This document shows, piece by piece, positions 1,085 to 19,496 of a stretch of 64,000 nucleotides of DNA. The translations under genes and the position numbers were made by a program. Within the stretch, counting starts at the first letter, position 1. Every line of letters begins with the position of its first letter. The stretch lies in the IMG/VR virus record IMGVR_UViG_3300047095_000752, positions 1 through 64,000 of that record, one strand, 5' to 3'. The notes beneath the pieces were generated by a model. The model had not been told where the DNA came from, ran no database searches, and was given only the letters and a program-made list of their open reading frames with translations.

Positions 1085-1096
1085 TATGAACTCCTT

Positions 1097-3101: not shown

Positions 3102-3119
3102 TATTCAATATATATAATG

Positions 3120-4731: not shown

Positions 4732-4742
4732 GAGTTCTCCTA

Positions 4743-4774
4743 TGGGCGCGGATCTAATATTGATCCGCGCCCAT
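4743..4774. terminator. GC-rich hairpin after the Hen1-ligase gene
   Basis: Inverted repeat atgggcgcggatc-taatatt-gatccgcgcccat. Confidence 0.5.
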
Positions 4775-4783
4775 CTATTTATA

Positions 4784-6988
4784 TTACAACGTTTTATCGA
4801 CTACACCAACAGAACTCATTCCGAGAAATGCAGCCACATACTTGAGTCTAGTCTCATGCCGATTATTCAAGAATGCATCTAATATTATTTTAGAGCATTC
4901 AAATTCTTGAATAGCAAGTCCACGCTTTTTAGCGACTTGGCGATGTGTTATATTTTTGAAATATTCTTCATTTTCATATAGAGGGAGTCCGTAAGTCAAA
5001 TTTAAATACTTATGTCCCCGGACTTTAAGAGCGGGTTGGATATAATATCCGGATGGTAATACACTTGAAAAATTATTCAATGGTTTATATACAAACCCTT
5101 CGAGTAAAGGTAGATCTGGATATGTATTGAAGGTAAGAGTTTCAGAAGGAGAACTACCGCAACGAGAGAGCCAGTCCAGTGTATTGTTTGCCATATCGTG
5201 TTCATCCGTTATAACGGTATATTTGCATGGCTTTAGTATTTTACAATCATCTGATATGATATCTATGTATTTCATCATATCCAAATTAGACATTGTATAA
5301 CCGTGTATAAGAGATCTTTTATGCTTGGTACCGATAGCAAGTACATGAAATGGTCGAATTTCAATATCAGTTTCTTTAGTAAATTCGTTGAGTGTATTCA
5401 ACACGGTCTCAACATACGCCGTATCCTTACCAGAATGTATATTGGATAGATATTGGGATTCGATTGCTGCGTAGAATTGCTCGTTAAGCATTGTTTTTGC
5501 AGCGTACGACCAAGGTAGAAGCTCAGCATCCAGAATAATAAAGGACACTTCCATCCCGATTTTTTCTTCAAGGGCGCTTATATTTTTTGATATTTCTGAA
5601 TGTAGGACGAGCTTTATATTTTGTTCATCTTCATTCTTGAAAAATTCAAATCCACCACGAGAATTTATTATAAGGGTTTTATCGTACCCTTTTTCTTGAG
5701 CAGCTTCAAAATTCTTAAACCACAATATTTGAGTTCGAGAACCCATATACTTAGTCTGTTGAATTAATTTAGTTACGCCACGCTCTCTGTAGTATTTAAA
5801 CGCACCCAGAGGATGTTCAATATAAGAGTCGAATTGTCCGTATAAAGTTCTATAATAGTCGAGTTTATTTTCTGGAAGTAGATGCTCCTTAAGAGTCTCA
5901 ACCGGAGACACTGTAGGTGCCATGTAAAATATATTCTTCGAGTTACTTATGAATGCACGTGACGTATACCCACGCCCAATTTCCTTCTGAGATACAGAGT
6001 AATCAGACACAGGGAGGTATATGTTACCTTGCATTTTATTCAAATTTTTAAGAGATTTAAAGTCGATCTGTCGTTCAATTTTATTTTTTCGAGGTTTTCT
6101 ATAATCGGTTGTGTCAAGAGTCCATTCGAGAATTCGCTCAGGACTCCATTCGGTTGGATCAACTTGTATTGAAAATATCCTATCTTCAACTTCACCTTCT
6201 TTTGGCGGATATGGTTTTGATATTGTTATCTTGTTATCTATAAGAGATTTATGTGTAGCGAATATACAGAAGGAGGGCTGCATATTCTCAAATTCTTCAG
6301 TCGGTTCTATTATATCAATATATTCAATATTGTATAAGTCGGATAGATAACTAACCACTTCGCGGCTAAATTGGTCTTTTGTGTATTCGACGCAATGGTC
6401 TCGCCGACGGAGGCTACCCGGCTCTATCGAATAGAATTTATTGAATTCAATATTAGGGGTAGTTAGATATAAATACTTCGGTACAAATATGTTTTTAATT
6501 AAATCTAAAATTTTAATACGATCACCATATTCAAAGTGCTCAATAGCTTCCACACAAGTCAATAGATCGGGGAGACAATCGCTTATAGTTATATTTGGGT
6601 ATAGTATATTACTTTCAATTACACGAACTTTATCAGTTGTTTTTATCTTTTTTATTTTATAAAAATCCTTTTCAATTCCAAGGATTCTAAGTTTCGGATG
6701 TTCTTTTACCAACATCTCCAACAGTTTACCTTCGGAAGTACACAGGTCCACCATGTACTCAATTTCAGGCATATCATTGAGTTTATTACATATCAATTCA
6801 TGTCTTTTCTGATGTAACGATATCTTCTTATCAACCAGTTCAGCTACAGATACTGGTGGGGTATATCCAAATTCTTGCTTAAATTTTTGCTTTAATGTTT
6901 TGTTATCTTGACAGAATTTGTTCATAATCATAGAGAAGTTTTTAGAATATCTTCTAACCGTAGTTGAATCGTTATCCGACATCTTCAT
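4784..6988 (-). CDS. Fusion of Hen1 RNA 2'-O-methyltransferase domain and Pnkp adenylyltransferase (RNA ligase) domain
   Basis: Hen1 MTase motifs DLCTSEG, VEAIEH, TTPNIEFN and RRDHCVEYT. Pnkp-ligase motifs YMAPTVSP, IEHP..AF.YY, KYMGSR, LDAELLPW, EGFVYKP, QPALKVRG..YL..TYG, KR.LA..EF and terminal DKTL. Confidence 0.85.
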   Translation of the reverse strand: MKMSDNDSTTVRRYSKNFSMIMNKFCQDNKTLKQKFKQEFGYTPPVSVAELVDKKISLHQKRHELICNKLNDMPEIEYMVDLCTSEGKLLEMLVKEHPKLRILGIEKDFYKIKKIKTTDKVRVIESNILYPNITISDCLPDLLTCVEAIEHFEYGDRIKILDLIKNIFVPKYLYLTTPNIEFNKFYSIEPGSLRRRDHCVEYTKDQFSREVVSYLSDLYNIEYIDIIEPTEEFENMQPSFCIFATHKSLIDNKITISKPYPPKEGEVEDRIFSIQVDPTEWSPERILEWTLDTTDYRKPRKNKIERQIDFKSLKNLNKMQGNIYLPVSDYSVSQKEIGRGYTSRAFISNSKNIFYMAPTVSPVETLKEHLLPENKLDYYRTLYGQFDSYIEHPLGAFKYYRERGVTKLIQQTKYMGSRTQILWFKNFEAAQEKGYDKTLIINSRGGFEFFKNEDEQNIKLVLHSEISKNISALEEKIGMEVSFIILDAELLPWSYAAKTMLNEQFYAAIESQYLSNIHSGKDTAYVETVLNTLNEFTKETDIEIRPFHVLAIGTKHKRSLIHGYTMSNLDMMKYIDIISDDCKILKPCKYTVITDEHDMANNTLDWLSRCGSSPSETLTFNTYPDLPLLEGFVYKPLNNFSSVLPSGYYIQPALKVRGHKYLNLTYGLPLYENEEYFKNITHRQVAKKRGLAIQEFECSKIILDAFLNNRHETRLKYVAAFLGMSSVGVVDKTL

Positions 6989-7610
6989 TTCCTTCGTCGA
7001 GCCAAGTTTTAGAGATTGTAATTAATTTATCAACAAATGCTTCATGTGCTGTATATATTCCACCGCGCCGGATAGTCAAAAATAACGATAATACATATGC
7101 CTTCTGTATGAATTCCGATGTCGTCATAGCTTCTTTTGGATTTAATTTCAACATAAAGCACGAACGCATTTCAATCGTCGATTCAACACTTGATGCATTA
7201 ATGTTGTAATCATCAAATAGCTTTACCGAGAATTCTAAGTCGTTCACAATCGGACCAATTATTATTTCTTGATTTTGCGTTTTTTGAAAAAATTGTTCGT
7301 CGGTTATATCACCTTTCGGTGGTCGTCCCGCGATGCAAGACCGTAGGGTTTCCCATAGTGCTTTTAGATGATACGGACATGCTGCAGCAACTTCTGAATT
7401 CAAATAGAAATCTAAATTCAATTGTCGTGCAACTTTTAAGAATTGCATATCATCTAATTCGGTTTTAATTTCATATTGCGTATCTACCCCGTTGACGAAT
7501 TGACCCGTGAATTTAAGTCCACGCAGGTCCTGTTCAAATGGGGGAGAATTTGGATTCTTAACTAATATATAAGATAAATGTGGTATATCACTTTTTATTG
7601 AAAAATACAT
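6972..7610 (-). CDS. Hen1 N-terminal (ligase-activating, Hen1_L-like) domain
   Basis: LSYILVKNP resembles DLGYLLHKHP; AYVL...VDKL....WL matches the end of the Hen1 N-domain; it lies directly upstream of the Hen1 MTase. Confidence 0.72.
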   Translation of the reverse strand: MYFSIKSDIPHLSYILVKNPNSPPFEQDLRGLKFTGQFVNGVDTQYEIKTELDDMQFLKVARQLNLDFYLNSEVAAACPYHLKALWETLRSCIAGRPPKGDITDEQFFQKTQNQEIIIGPIVNDLEFSVKLFDDYNINASSVESTIEMRSCFMLKLNPKEAMTTSEFIQKAYVLSLFLTIRRGGIYTAHEAFVDKLITISKTWLDEGNEDVG

Positions 7611-7611
7611 A

Positions 7612-9603
7612 TCAACCCTTTCCTATTCGTTCCAAAAATTCATCTTCAGATATAATTGTAATACCCTTAGATGCGGCTTTGGCTAACTTTGCCCCGGCAT
7701 TCTCACCGACTACAAGAAGAGTAGTCTTTGACGTTACCGATTTATCAACTTTACCACCGTTCTCCAAAATGAGTTCGTGGATACGGGGGCGGGGAGTGAA
7801 CAAGACCCCTGTCACACAAACCAGTTCACCAGCGAAGGCGTCCGATTTTGCTACAGTATTCATAGTCTCATTTTCATCAACTTTCATGTTAAATCCATAA
7901 GATACAAGATCTAATATAAGCTTTTCATTTTTATATTCTCTAAACCAATTATAAATACTATTTGCAACAACATCACCAATTCCATCTATAGACTTTAAAT
8001 CTTCTACTTTCTGAGATCTTAATGTTTGAATATCCTTGAATGTATTTGCAAGAAGAGAAGATGTTGTTTTACCAGTATTGGGAATTTGTAACCCAGCTAA
8101 TACTTTTTCAAATGGCATATTTTTTGATTTTTGAATGCTATTATATATATTTTTAGAAGACTTTTCAGCCATACCGTCGAGTTGGCAAATATCATCCGGT
8201 GTCATATCATATAGATCTATTATGTTATGAATCATATTTGCATCATACATTTTATCAACTATAGCGTCACCAAGACCATCAATGTCCATCACATCTTTGG
8301 ATGCCCAGTATAACACTTTACCTACGATTTTTCCAAGACAATCTGGATTCTGACATATAAGAGCTACATTATCATTATCATTAGCAACATCAAAACAACA
8401 TACCGGACATAATTCTGGTCGTTCAAATTTTTCCAAATTTTTCCCAATACGATTTTCCATGTTAACATATAATATCTGAGGGATAATTTCACCGGCTTTT
8501 TTAATACCGACAATATCTCCGATTCTTATATCCAGTTTCTCTACTTGATCAAAATTGTGGAGAGAAGCCTTAGCTACAACGGATCCACATATCTCAACAG
8601 GTTCAAGTATAGCTACCGGAGTCAGTGCGCCGGACTTACCAACCTGAACATCTATGTTCAATACTTTAGTTTCTTCAATTTCTTCTGCATATTTATAAGC
8701 GACTAACCATTTCGGGTGACTTGATGTATCTTTGAATTTAGAGCGACTTGCTATATCATTTATCTTAACGACAACACCATCAACCGGGTACGGAAGTGTA
8801 GTTTTATTTGCACCAAATTTATCAATAACAGATTTTAAGTTATCACCACCATTTACAATTTCATACTCGGGAGTCTTAAACCCAAGATCTTTTATTGTGC
8901 TTAATACTTGAAATTGATTTGTTAAGCCATGTTGTAACGGATCAACGATATCATATGCTATCATTGATAATTTACTTTGTTTCGATATTTTTGAATCTTT
9001 TCTTTTCAATGCTCCGGCGGCTGCATTTCTTGGATTTGCTAATAATTGTTCACCATTCAATTTTTTGTTACGATTTAATCCTTCAAATACTTTAAATGAC
9101 ATATATACTTCACCACGAATTTCAACGATATTATTCATACTATTAGGAATACTTAATGGAACTCCATTAATAACTTTTACATTTTCAATAACATTTTCAC
9201 CGATAGTTCCATTACCCCGAGTGAGAGCTTTAGTCAAAATTGAATTTTCATATATCAATGATATAGCCAACCCATCGATTTTATACTCAACCGAATATTC
9301 ATCTGATACTAATTTTGATTTTTTAGTAAATGAGTCCAATTCTTTAACCGAATATACCTTTTCTATACTCATCATCTTTTTAGAATGTTTTATTTTTTCG
9401 AATTCACTTACAGGGTCAGAGCCAATTCGTTGGGATGGAGAATCTGATATATAAGCACTGGGGTTATTTCTCTCATATTCAAGTAATTGATTGAACTTTT
9501 TATCATATTCTTCATCTGATATAATTGGATTAGAATCGTTATAGTATAAACAACTGTGTTTGTTCAACTCACTCTTAAGACTGCAGTACTCTTGGTTTGT
9601 CAT
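7612..9603 (-). CDS. ligA: NAD-dependent DNA ligase
   Basis: YY..SNP.ISDEEYD, KIDG adenylation motif, TRGNG, EIRGE, NPRNAAAG, C4 zinc finger, HhH repeats and BRCT domain. Start moved to MTNQEY at 9603. Confidence 0.96.
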   Translation of the reverse strand: MTNQEYCSLKSELNKHSCLYYNDSNPIISDEEYDKKFNQLLEYERNNPSAYISDSPSQRIGSDPVSEFEKIKHSKKMMSIEKVYSVKELDSFTKKSKLVSDEYSVEYKIDGLAISLIYENSILTKALTRGNGTIGENVIENVKVINGVPLSIPNSMNNIVEIRGEVYMSFKVFEGLNRNKKLNGEQLLANPRNAAAGALKRKDSKISKQSKLSMIAYDIVDPLQHGLTNQFQVLSTIKDLGFKTPEYEIVNGGDNLKSVIDKFGANKTTLPYPVDGVVVKINDIASRSKFKDTSSHPKWLVAYKYAEEIEETKVLNIDVQVGKSGALTPVAILEPVEICGSVVAKASLHNFDQVEKLDIRIGDIVGIKKAGEIIPQILYVNMENRIGKNLEKFERPELCPVCCFDVANDNDNVALICQNPDCLGKIVGKVLYWASKDVMDIDGLGDAIVDKMYDANMIHNIIDLYDMTPDDICQLDGMAEKSSKNIYNSIQKSKNMPFEKVLAGLQIPNTGKTTSSLLANTFKDIQTLRSQKVEDLKSIDGIGDVVANSIYNWFREYKNEKLILDLVSYGFNMKVDENETMNTVAKSDAFAGELVCVTGVLFTPRPRIHELILENGGKVDKSVTSKTTLLVVGENAGAKLAKAASKGITIISEDEFLERIGKG

Positions 9604-9626
9604 ACATTTTTTCCTTAAAAAAATAA

Positions 9627-9660
9627 GGAGGGAGTAATAGCAAAATGCTATCACTCCCTC
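9627..9660 (-). terminator. Hairpin terminator downstream of the GC-rich gene
   Basis: gagggagtaatagca-aaa-tgctatcactccctc with an A-run on its left (U-tract on the minus strand). Confidence 0.55.
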
Positions 9661-9738
9661 TATATCACAGGGGATGCTGCTGATGTTTATATTTTGTTTT
9701 TATTTTTGGGATATATGTATCAAAGACTGTATGGGATG

Positions 9739-10773
9739 TCAGTCTTCGGCATTCAACTTTTTATGTTGCCCGATCTTGGGGACGTTGAAACCCAAGTCGG
9801 TCAGGAGGGCACCCATCGCGGAGTGTCCCTCGTAGCGAGATGCACCCTTCGCGACCGCGCCCTCATCCATGCGGGTCGCAATCATGCGACGCCACACGGC
9901 GAACATCGCAGCCAGTTGCTGCGACTGGGCGGTGACAAATACCCCGGTGTCCACCACAATGCTGGTGGTGTGGTGGTAATTGCCCTCCAGCCATGGACGC
10001 GAACGCCATGCGTTGGGATCGAGATCCCAGCCGCAGTTACTGTACATGGCGGGCACGTACCCTGCCGCCTTCATGAACGCATCCGAGCCGTGCTGCTCGT
10101 ATGCCTTCAAGACCCAACCCGCGTGACCGGAGATGACAGACATCTCCTCAACATGGTGAGCCATGTTGCGGTGGTCATTGAACGACTTCATGATGTTGAG
10201 GCGTTCCTTCCAGTTCGCCTTGATGGCGACTTGGTACGTGCAGTGCGCTGCACAGCGCACTCGGAAGGACATGACCTGCCCATCCGCGCTGAACTCTCCC
10301 CGCATGATGGGGGAAGACAACGTCCGCTGGGCGTTGTCCGGTTTCGTGTAGACCACACGCATCTGCTGCTGCAGATGCCCCGCACCGGCGGGGATGGACT
10401 CGGGAAAGCGAGACCGGTGCGGATCAAGCTGCCACCCGTTCGCTTCCACGAACTCGTGGAGCTTCCTGTCGTATTGACACGACAGCAACTCCGCCGGGAT
10501 GATGGGGTAGTTCTTCAGAACCACCTCTTCCGCCACAGCGTTGAACTCTTTCTTGGTCAGCTTGTACTGACCATCACTGTTGTGCGCCACCTTTCGAATG
10601 GCATGGCTGGACACCGGGTCCAACGCCACGTTGTCGAAGGCGAGCACCGTATCCGACAACGGGCTGAACGTCAGTCCGTGGTGGGCGATGTCTGCTTCGG
10701 GCGTGTTGTTGATTGCGTCCATCAGATTGTTGAATTGCATGCTTAACATCTCCTGTAAAGATTTTACCGACAC
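9739..10773 (-). CDS. GC-rich hypothetical protein, probable early gene
   Basis: 344 aa ORF; a sampled 60-nt line is 62% GC against about 25% in flanking genes; motif A promoter directly upstream. Confidence 0.75.
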   Translation of the reverse strand: MSVKSLQEMLSMQFNNLMDAINNTPEADIAHHGLTFSPLSDTVLAFDNVALDPVSSHAIRKVAHNSDGQYKLTKKEFNAVAEEVVLKNYPIIPAELLSCQYDRKLHEFVEANGWQLDPHRSRFPESIPAGAGHLQQQMRVVYTKPDNAQRTLSSPIMRGEFSADGQVMSFRVRCAAHCTYQVAIKANWKERLNIMKSFNDHRNMAHHVEEMSVISGHAGWVLKAYEQHGSDAFMKAAGYVPAMYSNCGWDLDPNAWRSRPWLEGNYHHTTSIVVDTGVFVTAQSQQLAAMFAVWRRMIATRMDEGAVAKGASRYEGHSAMGALLTDLGFNVPKIGQHKKLNAED

Positions 10774-10801
10774 ATAGAATCTATCCCATAAGATTCTTTT
10801 A

Positions 10802-10821
10802 CAATAATTTATATATATAAT
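10802..10821 (-). promoter_or_regulatory. Phage promoter motif A (minus strand A(T/C)TATATATAT(A/T)AA(T/A)TATTG)
   Basis: caataatttatatatataat; about ten near-identical copies, almost all intergenic. Confidence 0.7.
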
Positions 10822-10845
10822 AGAATCAAAAATACTATATATATT

Positions 10846-11229
10846 TTAAAAAGATAATTTCAAAATCTCATCCAAACTTAACTTCGAGAAGTCATCCAGT
10901 GTTGGAATTTTAATCTTAGTTTCACTTTTCGAATTATATTCATTTGCAATTTGACTCAATTCATTATGTTTTAATCCAATCTGTGCTATATATTGTTGCT
11001 GTATTTTTATATTAGTTTCGGACTTATACGATTCCATAAGACTTTTTAATTCGGAGCATGATTGTGTATACGTATTTATAATACCATTTAATTCTAAAGA
11101 CACATGACCTTTATCAGTTGGAGTTGGAGTGTCTGAATGATATACGTAATAAAATACACCCAATCCAATTATAAGTATAACCAATACAATATTTACACGG
11201 ACAGATCTACTTTGCAAGAACTTACGCAT
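10846..11229 (-). CDS. Membrane-anchored hypothetical protein
   Basis: N-terminal TM helix VNIVLVILIIGLGVFYYVY followed by coiled coil. Confidence 0.65.
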   Translation of the reverse strand: MRKFLQSRSVRVNIVLVILIIGLGVFYYVYHSDTPTPTDKGHVSLELNGIINTYTQSCSELKSLMESYKSETNIKIQQQYIAQIGLKHNELSQIANEYNSKSETKIKIPTLDDFSKLSLDEILKLSF

Positions 11230-11579
11230 GGGGGTTCTCCTACTGTGGTTTTTGGATTTTGTTTTACGTCAAATGTGAGAATGCCATCAACATATGTATG
11301 TGTTATGATGGGTTTATAATGGAATATTGGAGATAATGGTAAATAGACTTTTTCGATTGTATGTTGGTACGAATATATAGTAGTAATGTCTTCATTATCA
11401 ACAACTTTATACAATACAATGCTACCATCAAAGTACTCATATAAAATCTTGCTCACACCGGGGTATATGTATTTCACTGTACAACTGTATGTACCGTCGC
11501 CACCACATTTACTATATACCCTTGCCCCATATGGTATCGGGTATTGTCCGAATAAAAACTTAAAAATTTTATTTAACAT
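11193..11579 (-). CDS. Hypothetical protein
   Basis: 128 aa ORF with an AAGGAA RBS. Confidence 0.55.
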   Translation of the reverse strand: MLNKIFKFLFGQYPIPYGARVYSKCGGDGTYSCTVKYIYPGVSKILYEYFDGSIVLYKVVDNEDITTIYSYQHTIEKVYLPLSPIFHYKPIITHTYVDGILTFDVKQNPKTTVGEPPCVSSCKVDLSV

Positions 11580-11619
11580 AGAATTCCTTTCATGTTGAAG
11601 TTGTTGATAATTTTTTACT

Positions 11620-11650
11620 AAAAAATGGGGGACCGAAATCCCCCATAAAA
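11620..11650 (-). terminator. Rho-independent terminator
   Basis: aaaaaa-tggggga-ccgaaa-tcccca type hairpin just after the stop of the 11652 ORF. Confidence 0.65.
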
Positions 11651-11651
11651 C

Positions 11652-11837
11652 TTACTTCTTGGCGCTGTGTTTGGGGCAGTAGTACAACTTACCCTCATTC
11701 GTCCACCCAGCCGGTGCCGCCTTCAGGAACGCCGCCTGTTCCGACGCCGCCCTCCCCGACTTTTGTCCGCATTTCTTATTGGACTTTGGATCTCGGTGGG
11801 AACAGTTGATTGCTACTTTCTTTGCGGTTACTGCCAT
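11652..11837 (-). CDS. Small basic zinc-finger protein
   Basis: C..(10)..C ... GW ... CPKH; AGGAG RBS; followed by a terminator. Confidence 0.7.
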   Translation of the reverse strand: MAVTAKKVAINCSHRDPKSNKKCGQKSGRAASEQAAFLKAAPAGWTNEGKLYYCPKHSAKK

Positions 11838-11883
11838 TTTTATTCTCCTTGTTAATGTAAATCCACATAATGTGGGTGCAGGG

Positions 11884-12408
11884 TCAATGTTCCTTGTACA
11901 GTATTTTCAACTTATTTATATTCTTCAGCGGGACATCCACCCCACGCGAAGTCTTCGTAGACCCAATCTGCTCGTCCTCTACACTCATGATCAAGTCCTT
12001 CAAGGTCTTCGAAGAAATTTGACCATGATACAGGGATATTTTCTTGGGTTTGGATTTGCTGATGAATTTCTTCATTTTGGTTGCTGTGTTCAATATATAT
12101 TTGTAGAGATACAAGCAGGGTAGCCTTTCCGATTGTATCATCCGGTAGTGGTTCGAGAAGATGCTAGACTTCGATACCGAATCGACTATATTCCCAAGGG
12201 AATCGCCTCTTGGTATAATGTTGTTTATAATCTTTAGTTGATTGTCAACATATTCGACGAGACTTTTATTCGAAGTCTTATCCCGGTTATTCACAATGAG
12301 ATTAACCGTTAGCTTCGGGTCGTTATGAAGGAGTTGATTTAGTATGAAGAATTTCGGATTCCCAGCAAACTTGATAAATAACACATCCAACTTAGCAACT
12401 GTGTTCAA
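11884..12408 (-). CDS. Hypothetical protein
   Basis: 174 aa ORF with a GAGGAG RBS. Confidence 0.6.
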   Translation of the reverse strand: MNTVAKLDVLFIKFAGNPKFFILNQLLHNDPKLTVNLIVNNRDKTSNKSLVEYVDNQLKIINNIIPRGDSLGNIVDSVSKSSIFSNHYRMIQSERLPCLYLYKYILNTATKMKKFISKSKPKKISLYHGQISSKTLKDLIMSVEDEQIGSTKTSRGVDVPLKNINKLKILYKEH

Positions 12409-12424
12409 TCTATGATTCTCCTCG

Positions 12425-12454
12425 AAAAAAAGCGCCCTCGGAATTGAGGGCGCT
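12425..12454 (-). terminator. Rho-independent terminator
   Basis: aaaaaa-agcgccctc-ggaatt-gagggcgct. Confidence 0.75.
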
Positions 12455-12465
12455 ACGGCTGGTGG

Positions 12466-12579
12466 TTAGATTAAGGCATTCTCGCCGTCATCGCGAGCAC
12501 GAGACCGGAACTTGTTATAGTTACGATCCATTTTCCGCCCATATATTAGATTATACAACCAATAACTTACGTACCGCAT
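12466..12579 (-). CDS. 37-aa peptide MRYVSYWLYNLIYGRKMDRNYNKFRSRARDDGENALI (absent from the ORF track)
   Basis: AGGAG RBS 8 nt before the ATG; terminator directly after the stop. Confidence 0.55.
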   Translation of the reverse strand: MRYVSYWLYNLIYGRKMDRNYNKFRSRARDDGENALI

Positions 12580-12603
12580 TTTCAATCTCCTACGAGTTTG
12601 AAT

Positions 12604-12746
12604 TGGTCCCCGGTGAGAAACTCAGGTACTTGCGAAACCTGTTTCTTCTTTTCCCATGAATTCGTGTACTTGTACACACCGAAGCCCAAGCTTACCACCC
12701 GCCCTAGAAGGACTCACGAAGTGGAATGTGTCATACAAGCGGGACC
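12604..12746 (-). ncRNA. Candidate structured RNA or 5' leader, about 140 nt
   Basis: The ends pair (GGUCCC/GGGACC); internal hairpin GAAA-CAGGU...ACCUG-AG-UUUC; lies below a motif A promoter with no long minus-strand ORF. Confidence 0.4.
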
Positions 12747-12805
12747 TCAAATTCATGCTCTGGTGGATTATCCAGTTGGACCGGAGTTAGTACATAGTCC
12801 AGATT

Positions 12806-12825
12806 CAATAATTAATATATATAGT
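12806..12825 (-). promoter_or_regulatory. Phage promoter motif A
   Basis: caataattaatatatatagt. Confidence 0.7.
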
Positions 12826-12855
12826 TTAAAATGTTATTTTGAAAGGGTTATTAAG

Positions 12856-13494
12856 TTAAAGTCCACGGCTCATAATATCACTTAAACGTTTGTAGCAAGT
12901 GATTGTAGTCTTAACATCATCCAACGCACTGTGTGCATTTTCATTCACTACACCACAAAATTGAGCTATTGTTCCTAATTGATTATTTTCCAGAGTTTTA
13001 TAATGCCTCTGTTCGGTTTGGAATTTTAATTCATTTATCGGTCGAATCCAGTTTGTAAAGTCCATAGCTTTCCAACGTAAATCTATAGTCTGTCGCAATA
13101 AATGTCGATTAAACAAAGACTTCTCCGGAGTTCGATCAAAGTCTAGAAATGGCTCCATAAACTTTGTATCAAACCCATAGTAGTTTTGACCGAATGGATC
13201 TATAATTTGACAGACCGGAGAAATCTTTTTAATCCAATCTACAAACAAATCTCGAACTACACTTTGGGGTGGATATTGAGTTAACATCTCAGGTGTAATT
13301 TTTGTTACGTTTTGAGCTTCTTGGGTGAATCTATCTGGATACTGGATAGAAATGTAATGTTGAAATATATCTTCAGTTGCGTTGAAATTTTCATCTACTC
13401 TTATAGCTGCAATTTGAAATATTTCGTTATATCCAGCTTTTAATCCTGTTGTTTCGAAATCAATACATACAAGAGGTATATTTAAATCTGACAT
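12856..13494 (-). CDS. DEDDh 3'-5' exonuclease (DnaQ/epsilon-like)
   Basis: DFETTG, QNYYGFD and HSALDD motifs. Confidence 0.88.
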   Translation of the reverse strand: MSDLNIPLVCIDFETTGLKAGYNEIFQIAAIRVDENFNATEDIFQHYISIQYPDRFTQEAQNVTKITPEMLTQYPPQSVVRDLFVDWIKKISPVCQIIDPFGQNYYGFDTKFMEPFLDFDRTPEKSLFNRHLLRQTIDLRWKAMDFTNWIRPINELKFQTEQRHYKTLENNQLGTIAQFCGVVNENAHSALDDVKTTITCYKRLSDIMSRGL

Positions 13495-13571
13495 TTACGG
13501 TGGTCCTTTTGGTTGTAATATTTATATATAAAAAAATAACCTAATCTTTTGGATTTGGTTATTGAATTTGT

Positions 13572-13647
13572 TGGTACGAACGGTGTGAATCGAACACACG
13601 ACTCAGAGTATATAAGACTCCGCTTCTCACCACTGAATTACGTTCGC
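13572..13647 (-). tRNA. tRNA-Ile(UAU)
   Basis: Cloverleaf GCGAACG...GGAGT-CT TAT AT-ACTCT...GTGTG TTCGATT CACAC CGTTCGT ACCA. Confidence 0.88.
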
Positions 13648-13690
13648 ATAAAAATAGGTGGGGAGGCTATCCTTTATGACAGACTCCCCA

Positions 13691-13767
13691 TGGTGATCGC
13701 GGTGGAATTCGAATCCACACTGTAAGATTTTTAAGATCTTTGCCTCGACCAGTTGGGCTACGCGACC
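13691..13767 (-). tRNA. tRNA-Leu(UAA) with a short variable loop
   Basis: GGTCGCG...AAGAT-CT TAA AA-ATCTT ACAGT GTGGA TTCGAAT TCCAC CGCGATC ACCA. Confidence 0.85.
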
Positions 13768-13786
13768 ATTATTAAACTTTCTAAAA

Positions 13787-13860
13787 TAACCCGACAGGAC
13801 TTTCACCTGCAGTTCGTAACCATTTAGTAGGAGTGTGTTTAATATTTTCACCACGGGTTA
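13787..13860 (-). ncRNA. tRNA-like element with an unpaired anticodon arm (pseudo-tRNA)
   Basis: Acceptor stem TAACCCG/CGGGTTA and T arm GCAGG-TGAAAGT-CCTGT are intact; no anticodon stem; no CCA. Confidence 0.5.
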
Positions 13861-13864
13861 TTCT

Positions 13865-13937
13865 TGAGAATGACTGGATTTGAACCAGCGACACGACGAT
13901 GACTTTCGTCTGCTCTACCAGACTGAGCTACAATCTC
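13865..13937 (-). ncRNA. tRNA-like element with an aberrant 6-nt anticodon loop
   Basis: GAGATTG TA GCTC..GAGC A GACGA-AAGTCA-TCGTC GTGTC GCTGG TTCAAAT CCAGT CATTCTC. Confidence 0.65.
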
Positions 13938-13973
13938 AATAGTTTTAATAGAGAATTAACTCTATGTTTTTGA

Positions 13974-14048
13974 TGGCTCTAGGGATTCGAGTCGAACGAA
14001 TAACGGGGAATTTAACAGATTCCTGCTCTCCCATTGAGCTACCCTAGA
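13974..14048 (-). tRNA. tRNA-Asn(GUU)
   Basis: TCTAGGG...GGAAT-CT GTT AA-ATTCC...CCCTAGA GCCA. Confidence 0.9.
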
Positions 14049-14058
14049 AAAGTTTTAT

Positions 14059-14760
14059 TCAAATATGAGACCACGTTTTTCTTTGAATTATTTTTTTAAT
14101 GTTATTATCGCTAACATTAAACATTTCACCTAATTTAACATAATTCTTTATTTCTGGGTATAACTTACGTATTTCTAATACTTGTTGTTTGGTGAGTTTG
14201 TTTGATATATAATTTGGATTGCCTTTTCTAGAGATTTTTTCTTTCGGCGGTATAGGTTCCCAGTGTAAATGTTTCCATCTTCTATTGTTAACAACTTCAC
14301 ATATAGTGCGTTGACCGACACCAAATAATTTACTTAATTTTTTCTGTGATATGTTATTGTTATTGTATATTTTTCTTATTTCTAATACTTGGTTATCGGT
14401 TAATCTAGAGCTTTTGCTATCTATACCTACGGCGTGGGTAATTAAATTATTTTTATGCGCATGTGTATTATTTTCTTTGACCGTACACCATTCTAGATTT
14501 TTGAGATCATTATTTGATTTATTACAATCCATATGATTTACAACGGCATCTTCGAACCAAGAGTCTGGATTAAAAGCGAACATTAGTAACCGATGGACCC
14601 GTAATTTTCTTCTTTTTGGTTTTAATGCTAAATGAACTGTATAATATCCACTATCTAAACTTGCTTTAACAAATTTACCACTATCATTATTCCGAACTCG
14701 ACCTAAATTACTAATAGAATATTTATCGGTTAAATGACAATCTCTCCAAATTTCTTCCAT
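14059..14760 (-). mobile_element. Free-standing NUMOD4-HNH homing endonuclease within the tRNA cluster
   Basis: EIWR...YSISNLGRVR, VHRL, VNHMDCNKSNN...NLEW...EN..HA, and two SxLTxxQVLEIRKxY HTH-like repeats. Confidence 0.88.
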
Positions 14761-14789
14761 ATATGATCCAATGCTACAATAAAAAATAA

Positions 14790-14866
14790 TGGTGCCAACA
14801 ACTGGATTTAAACCAGTAACTTACGATTTAGAAGATCGTTTCTCTATTCAATTGAGATATGCTGGC
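14790..14866 (-). tRNA. tRNA-Arg(UCU)
   Basis: GCCAGCA...ACGAT-CT TCT AA-ATCGT...TGTTGGC ACCA. Confidence 0.88.
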
Positions 14867-14881
14867 ATAGAAAACTTAAAA

Positions 14882-14958
14882 AGATATGGTGGTATGAATT
14901 ACACATACCGTCACACGGACCCGATGTCCGGTGTTTTATCCTTAAACTAACCATATCT
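14882..14958 (-). ncRNA. tRNA-like element with extended acceptor stem, 6-bp T stem and non-canonical anticodon loop
   Basis: AGATATGGT/ACCATATCT; D arm GTTT..AAAC; CGGAC-ATCGG-GTCCG; GGTATG-TGTAATT-CATACC. Confidence 0.55.
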
Positions 14959-14964
14959 AAAATT

Positions 14965-15042
14965 TGGAGCAGCGCCACTGACTTGCACAATGGATCATCC
15001 AACTGGAGTGCTGGATGGTTTTACTATTAAACTACGATCTGC
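14965..15042 (-). ncRNA. tRNA-like element ending in CCA, with long anticodon stem and 6-bp T stem
   Basis: GCAG..CG/CGCTGC TCCA; D arm GTTT..AAAC; ATCCAGC-ACTCCA-GTTGGAT; CCATTG-TGCAAGT-CAGTGG. Confidence 0.55.
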
Positions 15043-15059
15043 ATTGTAGATTCAATTGT

Positions 15060-15470
15060 TTCGGTCCCTGAAGACTTCTGGACCGACTTCACCATATGAC
15101 CGGGTAACTACGATGTCGGTATGTTAGCGACTCCGTCTACGCGACCGTCTTCGTGTGTATAAATAGTAGCATACCTCAAAAGCCCAAGTCAAGAGGTTTC
15201 TAAAATTTCACTTACACTGGTGAATCCGAACTGAGTTATAAATGGGAAAAAGCATCCGAAACCCGTTTACACACACTCAGCCATAATTTATAAGAGTACC
15301 GGTAAACGCAAGGCATTTACATCCCCGGTACTCCAAACCAAGCCACGTAGCTCAGTAAAGTCAAATAAAACATCGGGTATACCATAAAGTATACCCGATG
15401 GCTTCGCACCGATAGGGTACGAAAAATCCCACCAAGCCCACATGCGCTCCATGATGTTTATGATGGGATC
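15060..15470. ncRNA. Hairpin-dense non-coding tract, candidate ncRNA(s)
   Basis: Stems tcggtcc/ggaccga, ctgagt/actcag, gagtaccgg/ccggtactc and catcgggtatac/gtatacccgatg; no ORF in the track. Confidence 0.45.
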
Positions 15471-15475
15471 AAAAA

Positions 15476-15640
15476 GGTACCCGGATATCGGATTTGAACC
15501 GACGATCCACCTCTATCTATAGTTCGAGGTGACCCCTAGCTTCTATCAACACCTCATGTGACTAGCAAGGGTGTCTTCAAGATTCTTGTCTGACGTTCGG
15601 GAAGTCACTCCTTATATCAGACTCCTTTAGGACCGGGATA
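15476..15640 (-). ncRNA. Expanded tRNA-like RNA of about 165 nt
   Basis: Canonical T arm GTCGG-TTCAAAT-CCGAT; acceptor CCCGG/CCGGG; extra hairpins GTCTGA/TCAGAC and CACCTC/GAGGTG; directly below a motif A promoter. Confidence 0.55.
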
Positions 15641-15660
15641 GTTTAAACTTAAACTGTATA

Positions 15661-15680
15661 CAATATTTAATATATATAAT
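15661..15680 (-). promoter_or_regulatory. Phage promoter motif A driving the tRNA cluster
   Basis: caatatttaatatatataat. Confidence 0.7.
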
Positions 15681-15681
15681 A

Positions 15682-16263
15682 CTAAGCTCGTAAAGAAGCT
15701 ACACTAGCACTCATACTAGCGTATGCCGAGCGGGTTCCAACAGATGTAGGATCGTACTGTACAGTGTTATGAGTTTTGATCCCAAGACCACTACCAACGG
15801 CAAATGCGTCGATATTTGCGCCGGAGAAAATAAATTGCCAGTTGTATACTTCTTCTTGATGTGTGATTTTATTTTTAATATCATTCAATGTGAAATGACG
15901 ACTTGCATTTTCGTCACCATCTGTAATAATACAAATGATAACTTTTTCAGGTCTCTCTGGTTCCGGTAGTTTATTCAAATATACACCAATGTGATCTACA
16001 GTCTTTCCAATAGCATCGAATAAAGCTGTATACCCATTAGGTTGATAATTTTCTTTACTTAATAGTTCACAACTATTTAGATTTTCTACTTCACCGATAT
16101 CAACTTGAGTATCAAATATAGTTTTAATAATTTGAGCGGTTCCGGGTATTTTTCTTTGATCTTCAATAAGTGAATTATACCCGCCAATCGCATCATCTGT
16201 TAAAGAATGCATTGATCCGGACTTATCAACAATCATTCCAATTAGAGTATGGTCTTTCTTCAT
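15682..16263 (-). CDS. VWA-domain protein
   Basis: MIDAS motif DKSGSM, TALFDAIG, ITDGDENAS and WQFIFSGAN. Confidence 0.88.
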   Translation of the reverse strand: MKKDHTLIGMIVDKSGSMHSLTDDAIGGYNSLIEDQRKIPGTAQIIKTIFDTQVDIGEVENLNSCELLSKENYQPNGYTALFDAIGKTVDHIGVYLNKLPEPERPEKVIICIITDGDENASRHFTLNDIKNKITHQEEVYNWQFIFSGANIDAFAVGSGLGIKTHNTVQYDPTSVGTRSAYASMSASVASLRA

Positions 16264-16448
16264 TGTGTTGTTCCTTGTGTGTTTTGTTGTTAGTTGCTTA
16301 TATGGATTGTATCACATGATTTGTAGATTTGCAAGTGGATTAAAATAACTTTACTATAATTTTCATTATTATTTACTACAAAAAAGAATGGCTTTGCTAG
16401 AGCCATTCTTCCAACCATTCTTTCTAACCTAACTATACAACCGGCGAA

Positions 16449-16610
16449 CTACAACCGGCGACCCTTCTCCAGCGCCTTCTCCAGTTCTTTTTCGCGATTA
16501 GACCCCCATTTTTCCTCCCTCAAATTCCTGCAAAAGGCGTCGCGCTGCGCCTTTTCTTCGTCCCGCCGCTGTTCGTTCCGCGCCTTTTCTTCATCTGCAC
16601 GCTCTGACAT
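16449..16610 (-). CDS. 53-aa highly charged GC-rich peptide (absent from the ORF track)
   Basis: MSERADEEKARNEQRRDEEKAQRDAFCRNLREEKWGSNREKELEKALEKGRRL; sits between a motif A promoter and a terminator-like hairpin. Confidence 0.55.
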   Translation of the reverse strand: MSERADEEKARNEQRRDEEKAQRDAFCRNLREEKWGSNREKELEKALEKGRRL

Positions 16611-16685
16611 TTTTATACCCTTTCATCGTTTGTTTATAATATCTCAGTTCACATGAGCCGAGGATATCGAATAACTTCATGATAG

Positions 16686-16705
16686 CACTAATTAATATAT
16701 ATAAT
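16686..16705 (-). promoter_or_regulatory. Phage promoter motif A (variant)
   Basis: cactaattaatatatataat. Confidence 0.6.
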
Positions 16706-16744
16706 TAAATACTATATAATATAAACTAAAAATAGATCAAAAAA

Positions 16745-16779
16745 TAAACCATTATAACTTGTTAGGTTATAATGGTTTA
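16745..16779 (-). terminator. Terminator after the second tRNA-Ile
   Basis: taaaccattataac-ttgttag-gttataatggttta with an A-run to the left. Confidence 0.65.
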
Positions 16780-16786
16780 CGAGTAT

Positions 16787-16862
16787 TGGTAGACCGTGTA
16801 AGAATTGAACTTACGACTCCGTGTATATAAGACGCGGCTTCTAACCACTGAATTAACGGTCC
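16787..16862 (-). tRNA. tRNA-Ile(UAU), second diverged copy
   Basis: GGACCGT...CGCGT-CT TAT AT-ACACG...GTAAG TTCAATT CTTAC ACGGTCT ACCA. Confidence 0.85.
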
Positions 16863-16874
16863 ATCGAATGGTTG

Positions 16875-17460
16875 TAAAACCCTGAGTGCTATCCGGCGAA
16901 GGCTAGCACTCAGGGGGTCTGACTACACATTCCTATGCACTGGGAGTCGCACATAGGTCTTTCGTAGGAGCCCTCGCCAAAGAGCCTACTAGTGTAGAAA
17001 TATCATAGCCCGGTGAGTAGGCGGGGATAGACGCTACTCACCGGGTGGTGCTCTTGGACTTAGTCTGTGTGGACTTAGTCACTGAGCAAGATTTTAAAGA
17101 CTTTCGTCTTGAGTTGAAATTTACGACTTCTTGAAATCTTAGAGAAGTCGTAGTATCGTATACCATCTCGTGCACCGTCGAATCCAAAGGGCTGCATTCC
17201 CCTTTGCGGAAGGATTCGATGGTATGGTGATTTCCGGAACACTGTTCCGCGATACCGTTGTGTGGATTCGCGTGGAGTCAGTCACGCTGGTAGTGCGGCT
17301 GGGGGACAGCCGATGAGGGGAAAAGAAAGTCCAGCCAAGGAGTTATGTGCAGGGCTTTGGCAAACCCTTTGGGAGACTCCTTGGCTGGATAATTAAAAAG
17401 CTTCAACCCAGACAATGACTCTGAACCCAAGTGGAAGGAAATGGGTTATGCGACCAGAAT
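16875..17460. ncRNA. Large, highly structured non-coding element of about 600 nt
   Basis: GC-rich, no ORF in the track, many long stems: cctgagtgcta/tagcactcagg, cccggtgagtag/ctactcaccggg, tacgacttct/agaagtcgta, tcgaatcc/ggattcga, tccagccaaggagt/actccttggctgga. Confidence 0.6.
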
Positions 17461-17481
17461 CTTTAATCTAAGTTTTGCTTT

Positions 17482-17501
17482 CAATAATTTATATATATAG
17501 T
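17482..17501 (-). promoter_or_regulatory. Phage promoter motif A
   Basis: caataatttatatatatagt. Confidence 0.7.
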
Positions 17502-17505
17502 GGAT

Positions 17506-17772
17506 TTAATTATCTTTACAATTATTAGTTTCCATACACATATAAGATAACCACATGTTAAATTCATTACAAGCCCTGAGACTATTTATTAATACTTTCT
17601 TTTTTATACTAGATATCTCAACCGTAAAGTCCGGATGATCTTTTAACCTGACTTTATATGCTGGTATTAAATTTCGTGTTATAGGAAGTATGTCTATGTG
17701 ATCATAAATATTATCTAAAATGTTATTATATCGAGTTAAGTATGCTGAGTGTAAATTAGATGAGAGATTCAA
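17506..17772 (-). CDS. Hypothetical protein
   Basis: 88 aa ORF overlapping the upstream stop. Confidence 0.5.
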   Translation of the reverse strand: MNLSSNLHSAYLTRYNNILDNIYDHIDILPITRNLIPAYKVRLKDHPDFTVEISSIKKKVLINSLRACNEFNMWLSYMCMETNNCKDN

Positions 17773-18517
17773 GTTCTTGTTTAAACTCCTTTAATAGTAA
17801 TTGTTTATTTACATTTTTTTGTCTTATTTTTTTAAGAGTTGGTCGGTTTAGACAATCATCGGACGGGAACTCGTACTGAGTTCTTATACCGGGTGTATTT
17901 GAATTTATATATAATGTAATCAACCCATCGTTATAATTACTGTGTTTATTACGAACTGTAAATAAAAACTTTACTGTATATATACTTTCTATAAACTTTA
18001 ACAATTTGCTATAAGAACTACCATAAGCATACACAAATAACTTCATGTGGGTTTTTATATAATTTTTACTTATTTCAACCTTATTTGAATTTCTATACAA
18101 TATTATATTAATTAGACTGTACCCAATAGGTGTTATACTTGCTAATGTTAAATTTCGGGTGGTCCATCGAGTTCCCATATATGGATTTAGTACAGCATAC
18201 ATACCATTATGTTCATCGTTTTTTATAAAATAATTTTCGAAAAACCCATATGATATGGATATTATATTCCTAGATCTTTCTTTTAAAAAATCAATAGGTT
18301 TAGTCCAGAGCCAAGAATTATCTAAATCAACCTTTGTGAATAACGTGTGATTAATTGTATCTACATATAATAACTGTTTTATAAAAGATATAGTGAGAAC
18401 TTTTTGTTCATAATTTTTACTATATGTGGAAACCTGAGCTAGATTCGAAAGAGTTTTTATGCAGGTATGTATCAAGCTCATGTATTTCTGAGGCGAAGTT
18501 ACTATTATATGTTTCAA
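17756..18517 (-). CDS. Hypothetical protein
   Basis: 253 aa ORF. Confidence 0.6.
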   Translation of the reverse strand: MKHIIVTSPQKYMSLIHTCIKTLSNLAQVSTYSKNYEQKVLTISFIKQLLYVDTINHTLFTKVDLDNSWLWTKPIDFLKERSRNIISISYGFFENYFIKNDEHNGMYAVLNPYMGTRWTTRNLTLASITPIGYSLINIILYRNSNKVEISKNYIKTHMKLFVYAYGSSYSKLLKFIESIYTVKFLFTVRNKHSNYNDGLITLYINSNTPGIRTQYEFPSDDCLNRPTLKKIRQKNVNKQLLLKEFKQELESLI

Positions 18518-18525
18518 TGTAAATA

Positions 18526-18891
18526 TTATTTCATAGTTTTAATGTGGTCTTCATAATAAGCCAATGCTTCATCGAACTCAGTAAATACTTGTATTTCCAG
18601 TTGAGTGTGGGTCAACGATAATTTAACGGTACTATCAACCATAATTTCAACGTATGATGTTTTTTCTTTTTCATTGTGTCGAAAGCTCATGCTACGAATC
18701 GTATACGGACCTGAAAGGGAATAAACCTTTTTACCTTCAATCATGCTGTTTGATATTTTATAGCAATTGTACATGGGAAAAGATTCTATAGTAAGTTCTT
18801 TTACACACTTGTTAATATGCATTTGGAGGTCCTTGTCTTTTGTTGGTTTTGTGGAAGTTGTGGGTATAACGCATTGCAGTGTCATAACCAA
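18526..18891 (-). CDS. Hypothetical protein (start probably near 18822)
   Basis: ORF; internal MHINK start lies near the upstream stop. Confidence 0.55.
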   Translation of the reverse strand: MVMTLQCVIPTTSTKPTKDKDLQMHINKCVKELTIESFPMYNCYKISNSMIEGKKVYSLSGPYTIRSMSFRHNEKEKTSYVEIMVDSTVKLSLTHTQLEIQVFTEFDEALAYYEDHIKTMK

Positions 18892-19102
18892 CGACTAAAG
18901 GAAATAAACTTATGCGAAGTACCATTTCTAGTACGGGTGTTTGAATTATTAATCTTCTATAGTAATTATAAGGTGAGCCGGTTCCGGGGCGTAGAGATAC
19001 ATACACAACAGCCCCTGATAACCCAATTACGGATATTAGATACGTGATAAATAAAAATAGGCTTACATAATAGAAGCCCATAAATAAAATGTTAAATATC
19101 AT
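18812..19102 (-). CDS. Small membrane protein
   Basis: Long hydrophobic N-terminus. Confidence 0.55.
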   Translation of the reverse strand: MIFNILFMGFYYVSLFLFITYLISVIGLSGAVVYVSLRPGTGSPYNYYRRLIIQTPVLEMVLRISLFPLVVGYDTAMRYTHNFHKTNKRQGPPNAY

Positions 19103-19103
19103 A

Positions 19104-19496
19104 CTAATCTTCGTCTAAACCGAACTCCTCACCCAATGTAATACTTTCTTCTAGATTATCGCTTTCATCGTATGGTTCGGAGTCTGCAATATCAGCTTCA
19201 ATGTCTTGGTCTAGATTCTGAATAAATTTGGTCATATATTCAATATATTTTTCTTTGATGATACATACCGAACATAGCTTATCAGATAGTTCAAAAATAT
19301 TAGTTTGTTCGTTTATACTCTTAACAACATCATTATCTTTAAATTCATCCATAGTTTTTGCAATGTCGATAACATATTGTAGTGGCATTAGAGTGTCAAG
19401 AATAATTCGGATTTCATCTACCTTTTCAATCAGTAGGTCGGAATTATTTTCATATAGTGCTAAGATTTGTTCAATGTTTTGATTTGTTGCGGGCAT
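19104..19496 (-). CDS. Acidic hypothetical protein
   Basis: 130 aa, D/E-rich C-terminus, AAGGAA RBS. Confidence 0.7.
   Translation of the reverse strand: MPATNQNIEQILALYENNSDLLIEKVDEIRIILDTLMPLQYVIDIAKTMDEFKDNDVVKSINEQTNIFELSDKLCSVCIIKEKYIEYMTKFIQNLDQDIEADIADSEPYDESDNLEESITLGEEFGLDED

Follow-up and report, generated by a model that had tools for sequence, protein, structure and literature searches.

Genomic context of the ORF-free element

The element lies in a 64,000-nt stretch of DNA (hereafter the window; positions 1 to 64,000) of IMGVR_UViG_3300047095_000752, a 245-kb viral contig that encodes a T4-type large terminase, baseplate and tail-tube proteins, an NAD-dependent DNA ligase, an RNA ligase, HNH endonucleases, and two large proteins matching phage multisubunit RNA polymerase (RNAP) beta-subunit families. 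The terminase and the RNAP beta subunit are at most 31% identical to cultured phages among 50,697 deposited phage genomes, and the nearest RNAP relatives are jumbo phages such as AR9/PBS1 and YerA41; the contig therefore represents an uncultured jumbo phage of unknown host, with about 30-35% GC. All neighboring genes from 545 to 19496 are on the minus strand. Within this region, a segment at 16863-17480 contains no ORF exceeding 55 aa and has a GC content of 0.48-0.49 in 300-nt windows, compared with 0.27-0.31 just to the right and 0.32-0.37 to the left. It is preceded on the minus strand by a phage promoter core and followed by a tRNA-Ile(UAU), identified by both ARAGORN and Rfam, and an intrinsic terminator (Table 1). 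The segment contains perfect or near-perfect inverted repeats with arms of 10-15 nt and short spacers, and its minimum free energy is -230 kcal/mol on the minus strand, against -164 +/- 6 for dinucleotide shuffles (z -10.9), and -244.5 kcal/mol on the plus strand, against -193 +/- 5 (z -10.7); 0 of 20 shuffles reached the observed value on either strand. A sequence-only reading had described this segment as a GC-rich, multi-hairpin region between a promoter and a tRNA-Ile and had proposed a candidate large, ornate non-coding RNA (ncRNA) next to phage tRNA genes; the description was confirmed, and the main interpretation is supported by the analyses below, with some adjustments.

Table 1. Features of the element and its surroundings, with window coordinates.
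Feature	Coordinates	Strand	Description	Supporting observations
Promoter core	17482-17500	-	19-nt core CTATATATATAAATTATTG; transcription inferred to start near 17476-17482	Invariant in the window, L012, L014, L005, and L006 while flanks vary
Whole element	16863-17480	-	Candidate gene of an ncRNA of about 610 nt, predicted to fold into about fifteen helices	
Inverted-repeat arms	16880-16894/16901-16915 (15 nt); 17330-17343/17376-17389 (14 nt); 17009-17020/17034-17045 (12 nt); 17174-17185/17212-17223 (12 nt); 17122-17131/17143-17152 (10 nt)		Hairpin arms	
5' domain	17395-17482	-	Long irregular hairpin: P0, AAAGC/GCUUU; P1, 17474-17466/17413-17405; P2, 17461-17454/17424-17417; P3, 17446-17442/17429-17425; conserved apical loop UUUCCUUCC (17441-17430)	Single-sequence folds of the window and L005; in L014, P3 ACCCA/UGGGU to CUCGC/GCGAG and P2 GAUUCUGG/UCAGAGUC to GAUUCUA/UAGGAUU, by manual reading of the alignment
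H1	17330-17389	-	14-bp stem, variable interior of 23-32 nt	Perfect inverted repeat; three pairs changed on both sides in L014 (GGAGU/ACUCC to GGGGA/UCCCC)
H2 and H3	17270-17312	-	H2, 17312-17296, conserved loop UCCCC; H3, 17287-17270	H2 changes G-C to A-U in L014; both in the RNAalifold consensus
Central three-way junction	17152-17256	-	Closing stem GUAUCG/CGAUAC (17255-17250/17158-17153) enclosing H4 (17249-17235) and the long bipartite H5 (17228-17160)	RNAalifold consensus; H4 stem differs in all four lineages and always pairs; outer H5 stem covaries (ACCAU/AUGGU to AUCAG/CUGAU)
H6, linker, and H7	17097-17152	-	H6, 17152-17122, conserved loop AAGAUUUCA; conserved linker AAAUUUCAA; H7, 17110-17097, AAGAC/GUCUU with GAAA tetraloop in the window	H6 and flanks nearly invariant in all lineages, with a U-G wobble in L014 that pairs only on the minus strand; H7 AAAGG/CCUUU in L012 and L005
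Variable region (H8)	17050-17087	-	Tandem GACUAAGUCCA repeat in the window	L005 and L014 carry an extra long hairpin and flanks of about 80-110 nt that the window and L012 lack
H9	17009-17045	-	12-bp stem, 13-nt loop CGUCUAUCCCCGC	Perfect inverted repeat; CCUCGGUAAGU/ACUUACCGAGG with enlarged loop in the fold of L014
3' three-way junction	16923-16997	-	Closing stem CUACAC/GUGUAG (16997-16992/16928-16923) enclosing H10, inside the 35-nt invariant block 16995-16961, and H11 (16957-16932, 9 bp with G-U pairs, invariant loop GACUCCCA)	H11 keeps 9 pairs in L014 through three G-U pairs that would be A-C on the plus strand
H12	16880-16915	-	15-bp stem; loop CCUUCGCCG (16902-16894) complementary over 9 nt to UGGCGAGGG (16979-16971)	Three stem pairs changed on both sides
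tRNA-Ile(UAU)	16787-16862	-	17 nt after H12; its 5' end is inferred to define the 3' end of the large RNA	ARAGORN and Rfam
Intrinsic terminator	16739-16780	-	15-bp hairpin followed by a U-run	Terminator scan
Sigma-70-like matches	16612-16640; 16692-16720	+		10 found, 11.3 expected (chance frequency)
Second ORF-free block	14867-15662	-	Headed by a promoter core at 15661-15678 and ending at tRNA-Arg	208 consensus pairs
Second tRNA-Ile	13572-13647		Paralog of the tRNA-Ile(UAU) above	
Third ORF-free stretch			390 nt, headed by a promoter core at 12806-12823 and ending in a terminator	

Distribution and conservation of the element

To assess the distribution of the element, blastn and megablast searches were run against 50,697 phage records, but no match was obtained for the element or for 14 kb around it. 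Exact and gapped DNA patterns drawn from the most conserved blocks, scanned in IMG/VR, JGI metagenomes, and GTDB genomes, returned only the source contig plus chance hits in DNA of 57-68% GC and one Staphylococcus borealis hit, all of which were rejected by nhmmer or blastn. In contrast, synteny was informative: relatives of the proteins of 253 aa and 193 aa encoded nearby led to contigs that carry the element at the same place, specifically L012 (ENA ERZ17913565) and L014/L015 (SRR13608714 and SRR13608701), which are full length, L005 (SRR30246831), which contains the 5' three quarters, L013 (SRR5535877), which contains the 3' part and is identical to L012 in this part in the alignment, and L006, which contains only the start. 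Four further contigs (L007-L010) were identical copies of the window's phage in other samples. The element is known from four lineages, of which effectively three are full length, all from one small clade of uncultured jumbo phages. A HMMER search of 1.84 billion representatives with the adjacent 253-aa protein found only the L014 ortholog and one unrelated repeat protein, the 88-aa neighbor found only two clusters, more distant relatives of the 193-aa neighbor (L002, L003, L022, and L023) lack the element, and a covariance model of the 3' domain found nothing new in 195 kb of the collected loci.

Over aligned bases, the element is 90.2% (L012) and 76.5% (L014) identical to the window at the nucleotide level, whereas the adjacent genes are 72.7%/65.7% (253 aa), 82.8%/69.8% (88 aa), and 81.6%/68.6% (193 aa); it is thus as conserved as the best-conserved protein genes nearby (RNase T-like gene, 88/78%; tail-tube-like gene, 90% against L012). 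The element does not code for protein: the longest ORF in L012 is 42 aa, no ORF position is shared, substitutions fall 31/35/32 over the three codon phases, and indels are not multiples of three. The foreign GC content, together with the gain and loss of whole hairpins between lineages, could alternatively suggest an accumulation of selfish palindromic insertions (MITE- or REP-like) or foreign DNA with no function of its own; however, none of the hairpins, including the one inserted in L005 and L014, has another copy in the 64-kb window or in the related loci, the segment is more conserved than the three adjacent genes, and loops and linkers, not only stems, are invariant, making this the least likely of the alternatives considered.

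Predicted secondary structure and covariation

RNAalifold analysis of a four-lineage L-INS-i alignment yielded 134 pairs, of which 95.7% of cells are canonical, compared with 34-43% when the 3' partners were slid by 1-3 columns; 24 pairs changed on both sides, compared with 2-10 in the slid controls (an earlier alignment gave 22 of 124). Between the window and L014, 19 double changes keep the pair and four break it. For the 3' domain, re-aligned to a covariance model, 99.2% of cells are paired and eight of 42 pairs show double changes; 0 of 500 shuffles reached either value, and slid controls gave 0-2. Because only three or four related sequences from one narrow clade are known, these are counts rather than statistical tests of covariation in the R-scape sense, and related sequences can beat shuffles without structure; nonetheless, the per-helix picture is convincing, with H1, H2, H7, H11, H12, and the closing stem of the 3' junction all showing compensatory changes. 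The 5' domain helices were not returned as such by RNAalifold. The inner arms of H5 are replaced in L014 by a different sequence that still pairs in its own fold (CCCAUA..CAUCA / UGAUG..UAUGGG), but these cells appear as mismatches in the MAFFT alignment, so this rests on the single-sequence fold. The interior of H1 differs in sequence and length between lineages.

An all-against-all helix scan identified the 9-nt complementarity between the H12 loop and the invariant block as a candidate kissing or pseudoknot contact, either intra- or intermolecular, with a duplex energy of -14.9 kcal/mol. The single C-to-U change in L014 keeps a G-U pair; however, the contact competes with the local H10 hairpin, has no compensatory change, and has only modest support against chance (39 of 2000 shuffles gave a 9-nt run for this one loop, with about a dozen loops that could have been tested), and it is therefore unproven. 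The term "ornate" in the sequence-only reading is thus only partly earned, as two three-way junctions and this one candidate pseudoknot can be shown, and the rest is a string of long, nearly perfect hairpins.

Such hairpins are equally compatible with structures formed in single-stranded or supercoiled DNA, as both strands fold equally well and compensatory changes preserve DNA hairpins as well as RNA hairpins. No support was found, however, for a replication origin, which the sequence-only reading had left open: the element contains no iterons or AT-rich unwinding element, its only direct repeat is one 11-nt tandem pair in the variable region, the segment is the most GC-rich of its neighborhood, and no cumulative-skew turning point is specific to 17 kb, although the window covers only a quarter of the genome. 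Moreover, non-Watson-Crick positions are biased to G-U on one strand, which DNA hairpins would not favor, and the element is framed exactly by a promoter and a tRNA plus terminator. A DNA-level element, such as an origin, packaging site, or recombination hotspot, is thus considered very unlikely.

Strand assignment and the promoter-RNA-tRNA-terminator unit

Folding energy alone was inconclusive with respect to strand (RNAalifold, -127.4 against -124.7), and the sequence-only reading had called the strand ambiguous, although in L014 z is -5.6 on the tRNA strand and -1.8 on the other. Its claim that G-U pairs favor the plus strand was not borne out. In helices predicted on both strands, 10 pair columns carry G-U on the minus strand and three show A-C, which would be G-U on the plus strand; in the 3' domain, the count is 17 G-U and 0 A-C cells, such that the same helices would be only 85.5% paired on the other strand, but this second count uses a structure predicted on the minus strand and leans that way. 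The genomic context also points to the minus strand. A 23-nt version of the promoter core has five matches in the window, against 0.00 expected, and a slightly degenerate form, which begins with C or T and varies at a few A/T positions, occurs eight times, always on the minus strand and always in front of a gene or an ORF-free block; it is interpreted as a promoter, perhaps for the phage's own polymerase. A functional plus-strand RNA, or transcription of both strands, would be in line with the stable plus-strand fold, its purine-rich loops, and two sigma-70-like matches, but these matches are at chance frequency and would read antisense through the tRNA, no plus-strand terminator was found, and H11, H6, and the 3' junction keep pairing through G-U only on the minus strand; this possibility is also very unlikely.

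In the window, L012, and L014, the element is followed after 7-23 nt by a tRNA, and the tRNA by an intrinsic terminator. The tRNA is not the same gene, however: in L012, L013, and L014 the slot holds a different tRNA with anticodon CAU, 65-67% identical to the window's tRNA-Ile(UAU), and the hairpin plus U-run terminators of L012 (8625-8656) and L014 (read by eye) are unrelated in sequence. The arrangement is therefore conserved, whereas the parts are not. Because the element always directly precedes a tRNA and shares its promoter and terminator, it could act in cis as a long 5' leader that protects, times, or regulates tRNA maturation and is degraded after RNase P cleavage. This is considered unlikely, because the conserved partner is the upstream RNA rather than the tRNA, about 600 nt with invariant loops and a 35-nt invariant block is far more than any known tRNA leader needs, and other tRNAs in the same island have short spacers.

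Comparison with known RNA families

A covariance-model search of the window against all 4227 Rfam 15 models at the gathering threshold returned no hit other than tRNA, and searches at E up to 10 with permissive filters (window 16600-17700, L014 2300-3300, and L012 7850-8700) returned nothing plausible; the sub-threshold hits were eukaryotic lncRNA, miRNA, or snoRNA models, or leader and sRNA models over the terminator region, at E 0.05-9. Thus, no match was obtained to GOLLD (RF01998), ROOL (RF03087), OLE, RNase P RNA, tmRNA, 6S, group I/II introns, phi29 pRNA, HEARO, raiA, or other Rfam families, and ARAGORN found no tmRNA. Our literature searches found no description of such an RNA in jumbo phages.

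In where it sits, the element most resembles GOLLD and ROOL, although this context does not show membership. GOLLD is a large ncRNA of phages and prophages, often near tRNA islands; the example studied by cryo-EM lies downstream of a Met-tRNA, tRNAs sometimes sit in its linker, and it has a variable part next to a conserved part and conserved loop-linker kissing contacts (PMC5737381; PMC12286853). It is, however, longer (more than 800 nt, against about 610 nt here) and has far more multistem junctions. ROOL is similar in size (average 581 nt), occurs in phages or prophages near tRNAs with which it is possibly co-transcribed, has a poorly conserved internal linker, and is of unknown function (PMC5737381; PMC12286853), but it spans several bacterial phyla, whereas the RNA described here is known from one small phage clade, and ROOL's six junctions and three pseudoknots make it much more complex, although with only four lineages further long-range pairs could be missed here. 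In GOLLD and ROOL, loop-linker contacts of the type proposed here, first seen as tertiary covariation, turned out to be intermolecular bridges (PMC12286853). The phi29 packaging RNA (Rfam Phage_pRNA) is likewise a phage-encoded structured RNA, and it works as a homo-oligomer through loop-loop base pairing, one possible use of the 9-nt complementarity; it is about 170 nt and is not tRNA-linked.

Proposed origin and role of the RNA

Taken together, the element is best explained, with reasonable confidence, as the minus-strand gene of a stable, highly structured ncRNA of about 610 nt (about 585 nt in L012 and about 715 nt in L014) that belongs to a family not described so far, found only in a small clade of uncultured jumbo phages that encode their own multisubunit RNAP. 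In the absence of expression data, the transcript, its ends, its stability, and its processing are all inferred. The primary transcript is inferred to be a dicistronic RNA-tRNA precursor, from which host RNase P, given its established role in cutting every tRNA precursor at the mature 5' end, probably releases the large RNA with a defined 3' end, which would explain why some tRNA, whatever its identity, always abuts it. By analogy only, the RNA is inferred to act in trans during infection as a structural or scaffold RNA, the way GOLLD and ROOL are now thought to act, with its conserved or invariant loops (UCCCC, AAGAUUUCA, GACUCCCA, UUCGCC, and UUUCCUUCC), which are strikingly pyrimidine-rich on the transcribed strand, and the 35-nt block as contact sites for itself, another RNA, or a protein.

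The second ORF-free block is 91-98% identical to L012 and about 77% to L014; 94% of its consensus pairs are canonical, and 37 pairs show double changes, compared with 1-5 in slid controls. Its first 190 nt or so look like a tRNA acceptor stem and T-arm with about 140 nt inserted between them. The element therefore appears to be one of several large RNAs in an RNA island of this phage clade. A more speculative possibility, regarded as unlikely but not excluded, is that the 13.5-17.5 kb stretch produces several large RNAs of new families, including the 610-nt RNA, the second region of about 800 nt, and a tRNA-like chimera, each driven by the same phage promoter and cut out by the flanking tRNAs, and that the 610-nt RNA self-assembles through its 9-nt loop complementarity into an RNA-only particle, which would represent a third, independent origin of the GOLLD/ROOL way of life.

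Bacterial and phage RNAs of this size with conserved structure are very rare; when ROOL was described, only rRNAs, GOLLD, and group II introns were larger and more complex (PMC5737381), and GOLLD and ROOL have since been shown to form RNA-only cages, although their function remains unknown (PMC12286853). The element offers a compact test object, with a defined promoter, a 610-nt RNA, and a tRNA handle, and the second structured RNA 1.2 kb away shows that tRNA islands of uncultured jumbo phages hide further large RNAs. An unrelated family with the same genomic habit (phage, own promoter, fused to a tRNA) would be an independent data point on what such RNAs do, and would suggest that tRNA linkage is a functional requirement, whether for processing or for delivery, and not an accident.

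Additional ORF-free blocks and an apparent tRNA-like domain

A second ORF-free, GC-richer block was located between the 193-aa gene and tRNA-Arg, headed by the same promoter core as the large RNA. This block was 91-98% identical to its counterpart in L012 and about 77% identical to L014, both contigs of related phages; L012 carries two extra inserts of about 120 and 85 nt. The fold z was -4.8, and RNAalifold gave 208 pairs, of which 94% were canonical and 37 were changed on both sides, compared with 1-5 in slid controls. No Rfam match was obtained, and the block appears to be a second new large structured RNA. The first 190 nt or so of the block look like a tRNA-like domain, in which a 5' CCCGG pairs with a 3' CCGGG-UACC; the corresponding pairing in L014 is CCCAGUG/CACUGGG, so it covaries. 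Next to it is a T-arm, GUCGG-UUCAAAU-CCGAU, followed by a U-run, whereas about 140 nt are inserted where the D and anticodon arms would be. In L014, a tRNA-Arg follows this domain directly. The domain was not called by ARAGORN or by the Rfam tmRNA and YrlA models.

A third copy of the promoter core heads an ORF-free stretch of about 390 nt with 42-47% GC, which ends in the terminator GCGCCCTC..GAGGGCGC plus a T-run just before the 174-aa gene. This stretch was 86% identical to L012, but the fold z was only -2.0, and it could be an sRNA or a long 5' UTR.

Coordinates of additional features in the phage genome window and related contigs
Feature	Window position	Strand	Position in related contigs
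Second ORF-free block	14867-15681	minus	L012:10575-11610
Promoter core heading the second block	15661-15678	minus	
tRNA-like domain	about 15455-15640	minus	
Third ORF-free stretch	12385-12830	minus	L012:15583-16038
Promoter core heading the third stretch	12806-12823	minus	
Terminator of the third stretch	near 12430		
Probable promoter motif, eight copies	10802, 12806, 15661, 17482, 23811, 45192, 49783, 63010	minus	
tRNA with two-base 'anticodon' (ARAGORN)	13864-13938	minus	L014:11577-11651; L012:11813-11888
tRNA-Ile(UAU) behind the large RNA	16787-16862	minus	
Paralogous tRNA-Ile(UAU)	13572-13647	minus	
53-aa ORF	16449-16610	minus	
Overlapping ORFs of about 350 aa	9694-10746; 9739-10773	plus; minus	
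ORFs matching RNA polymerase beta-subunit families	51248-54286; 55285-57993	minus	
Hairpin inserted in the large RNA	absent		L005:5089-5133; L014:2829-2875

Variation in tRNAs and in the large RNA

One tRNA was reported by ARAGORN with a two-base 'anticodon'; by eye, it has a 5-bp anticodon stem and a 6-nt loop (AAGUCA in the window and AAGCCA in L014), whereas the L012 orthologue has a 7-nt loop and is read as Ala(UGC), but without U33. Rfam scored it as tRNA at 48.7 bits. The two paralogous tRNA-Ile(UAU) genes, both with encoded CCA, are identical in the loops but have fully compensated differences in the acceptor, anticodon, and T stems, and the copy behind the large RNA replaces the CAU tRNA found in that slot in related phages. 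Within the variable region of the large RNA, a long hairpin (GGUACCCACC...GGUGGGUACC) is inserted in L014 and in L005, a third related contig, but is absent from the window and L012. This distribution does not follow the overall similarity, since L005 is closest to L012, and implies either two losses or exchange by recombination.

Other ORFs, probable promoter motif, and phage RNA polymerase

A 53-aa ORF rich in Glu, Lys, and Arg (MSERADEEKARNEQRRDEEKAQRD...) lies in a short stretch with 44% GC and very strong strand skew (GC skew -0.41); it is called as a gene in the same phage's other copies, but in L012 that interval holds three opposite-strand genes and a 71-aa gene instead. Two ORFs of about 350 aa overlap almost completely on opposite strands in a block of about 44% GC, and the promoter core at 10802 points to the minus-strand one.

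An 18-nt AT-rich motif, TATATATAT followed by three A/T bases, then A, one A/T base, and TATTG (usually preceded by C or T), occurs eight times, only on the minus strand, and precedes both protein genes and the ORF-free RNA blocks. It is probably the promoter of one temporal class, perhaps read by the phage-encoded RNA polymerase. Two large ORFs matched phage multisubunit RNA polymerase beta-subunit families, with relatives at 24-31% identity that include AR9/PBS1, YerA41, and other phages; the phage therefore probably transcribes part of its genome with its own polymerase.
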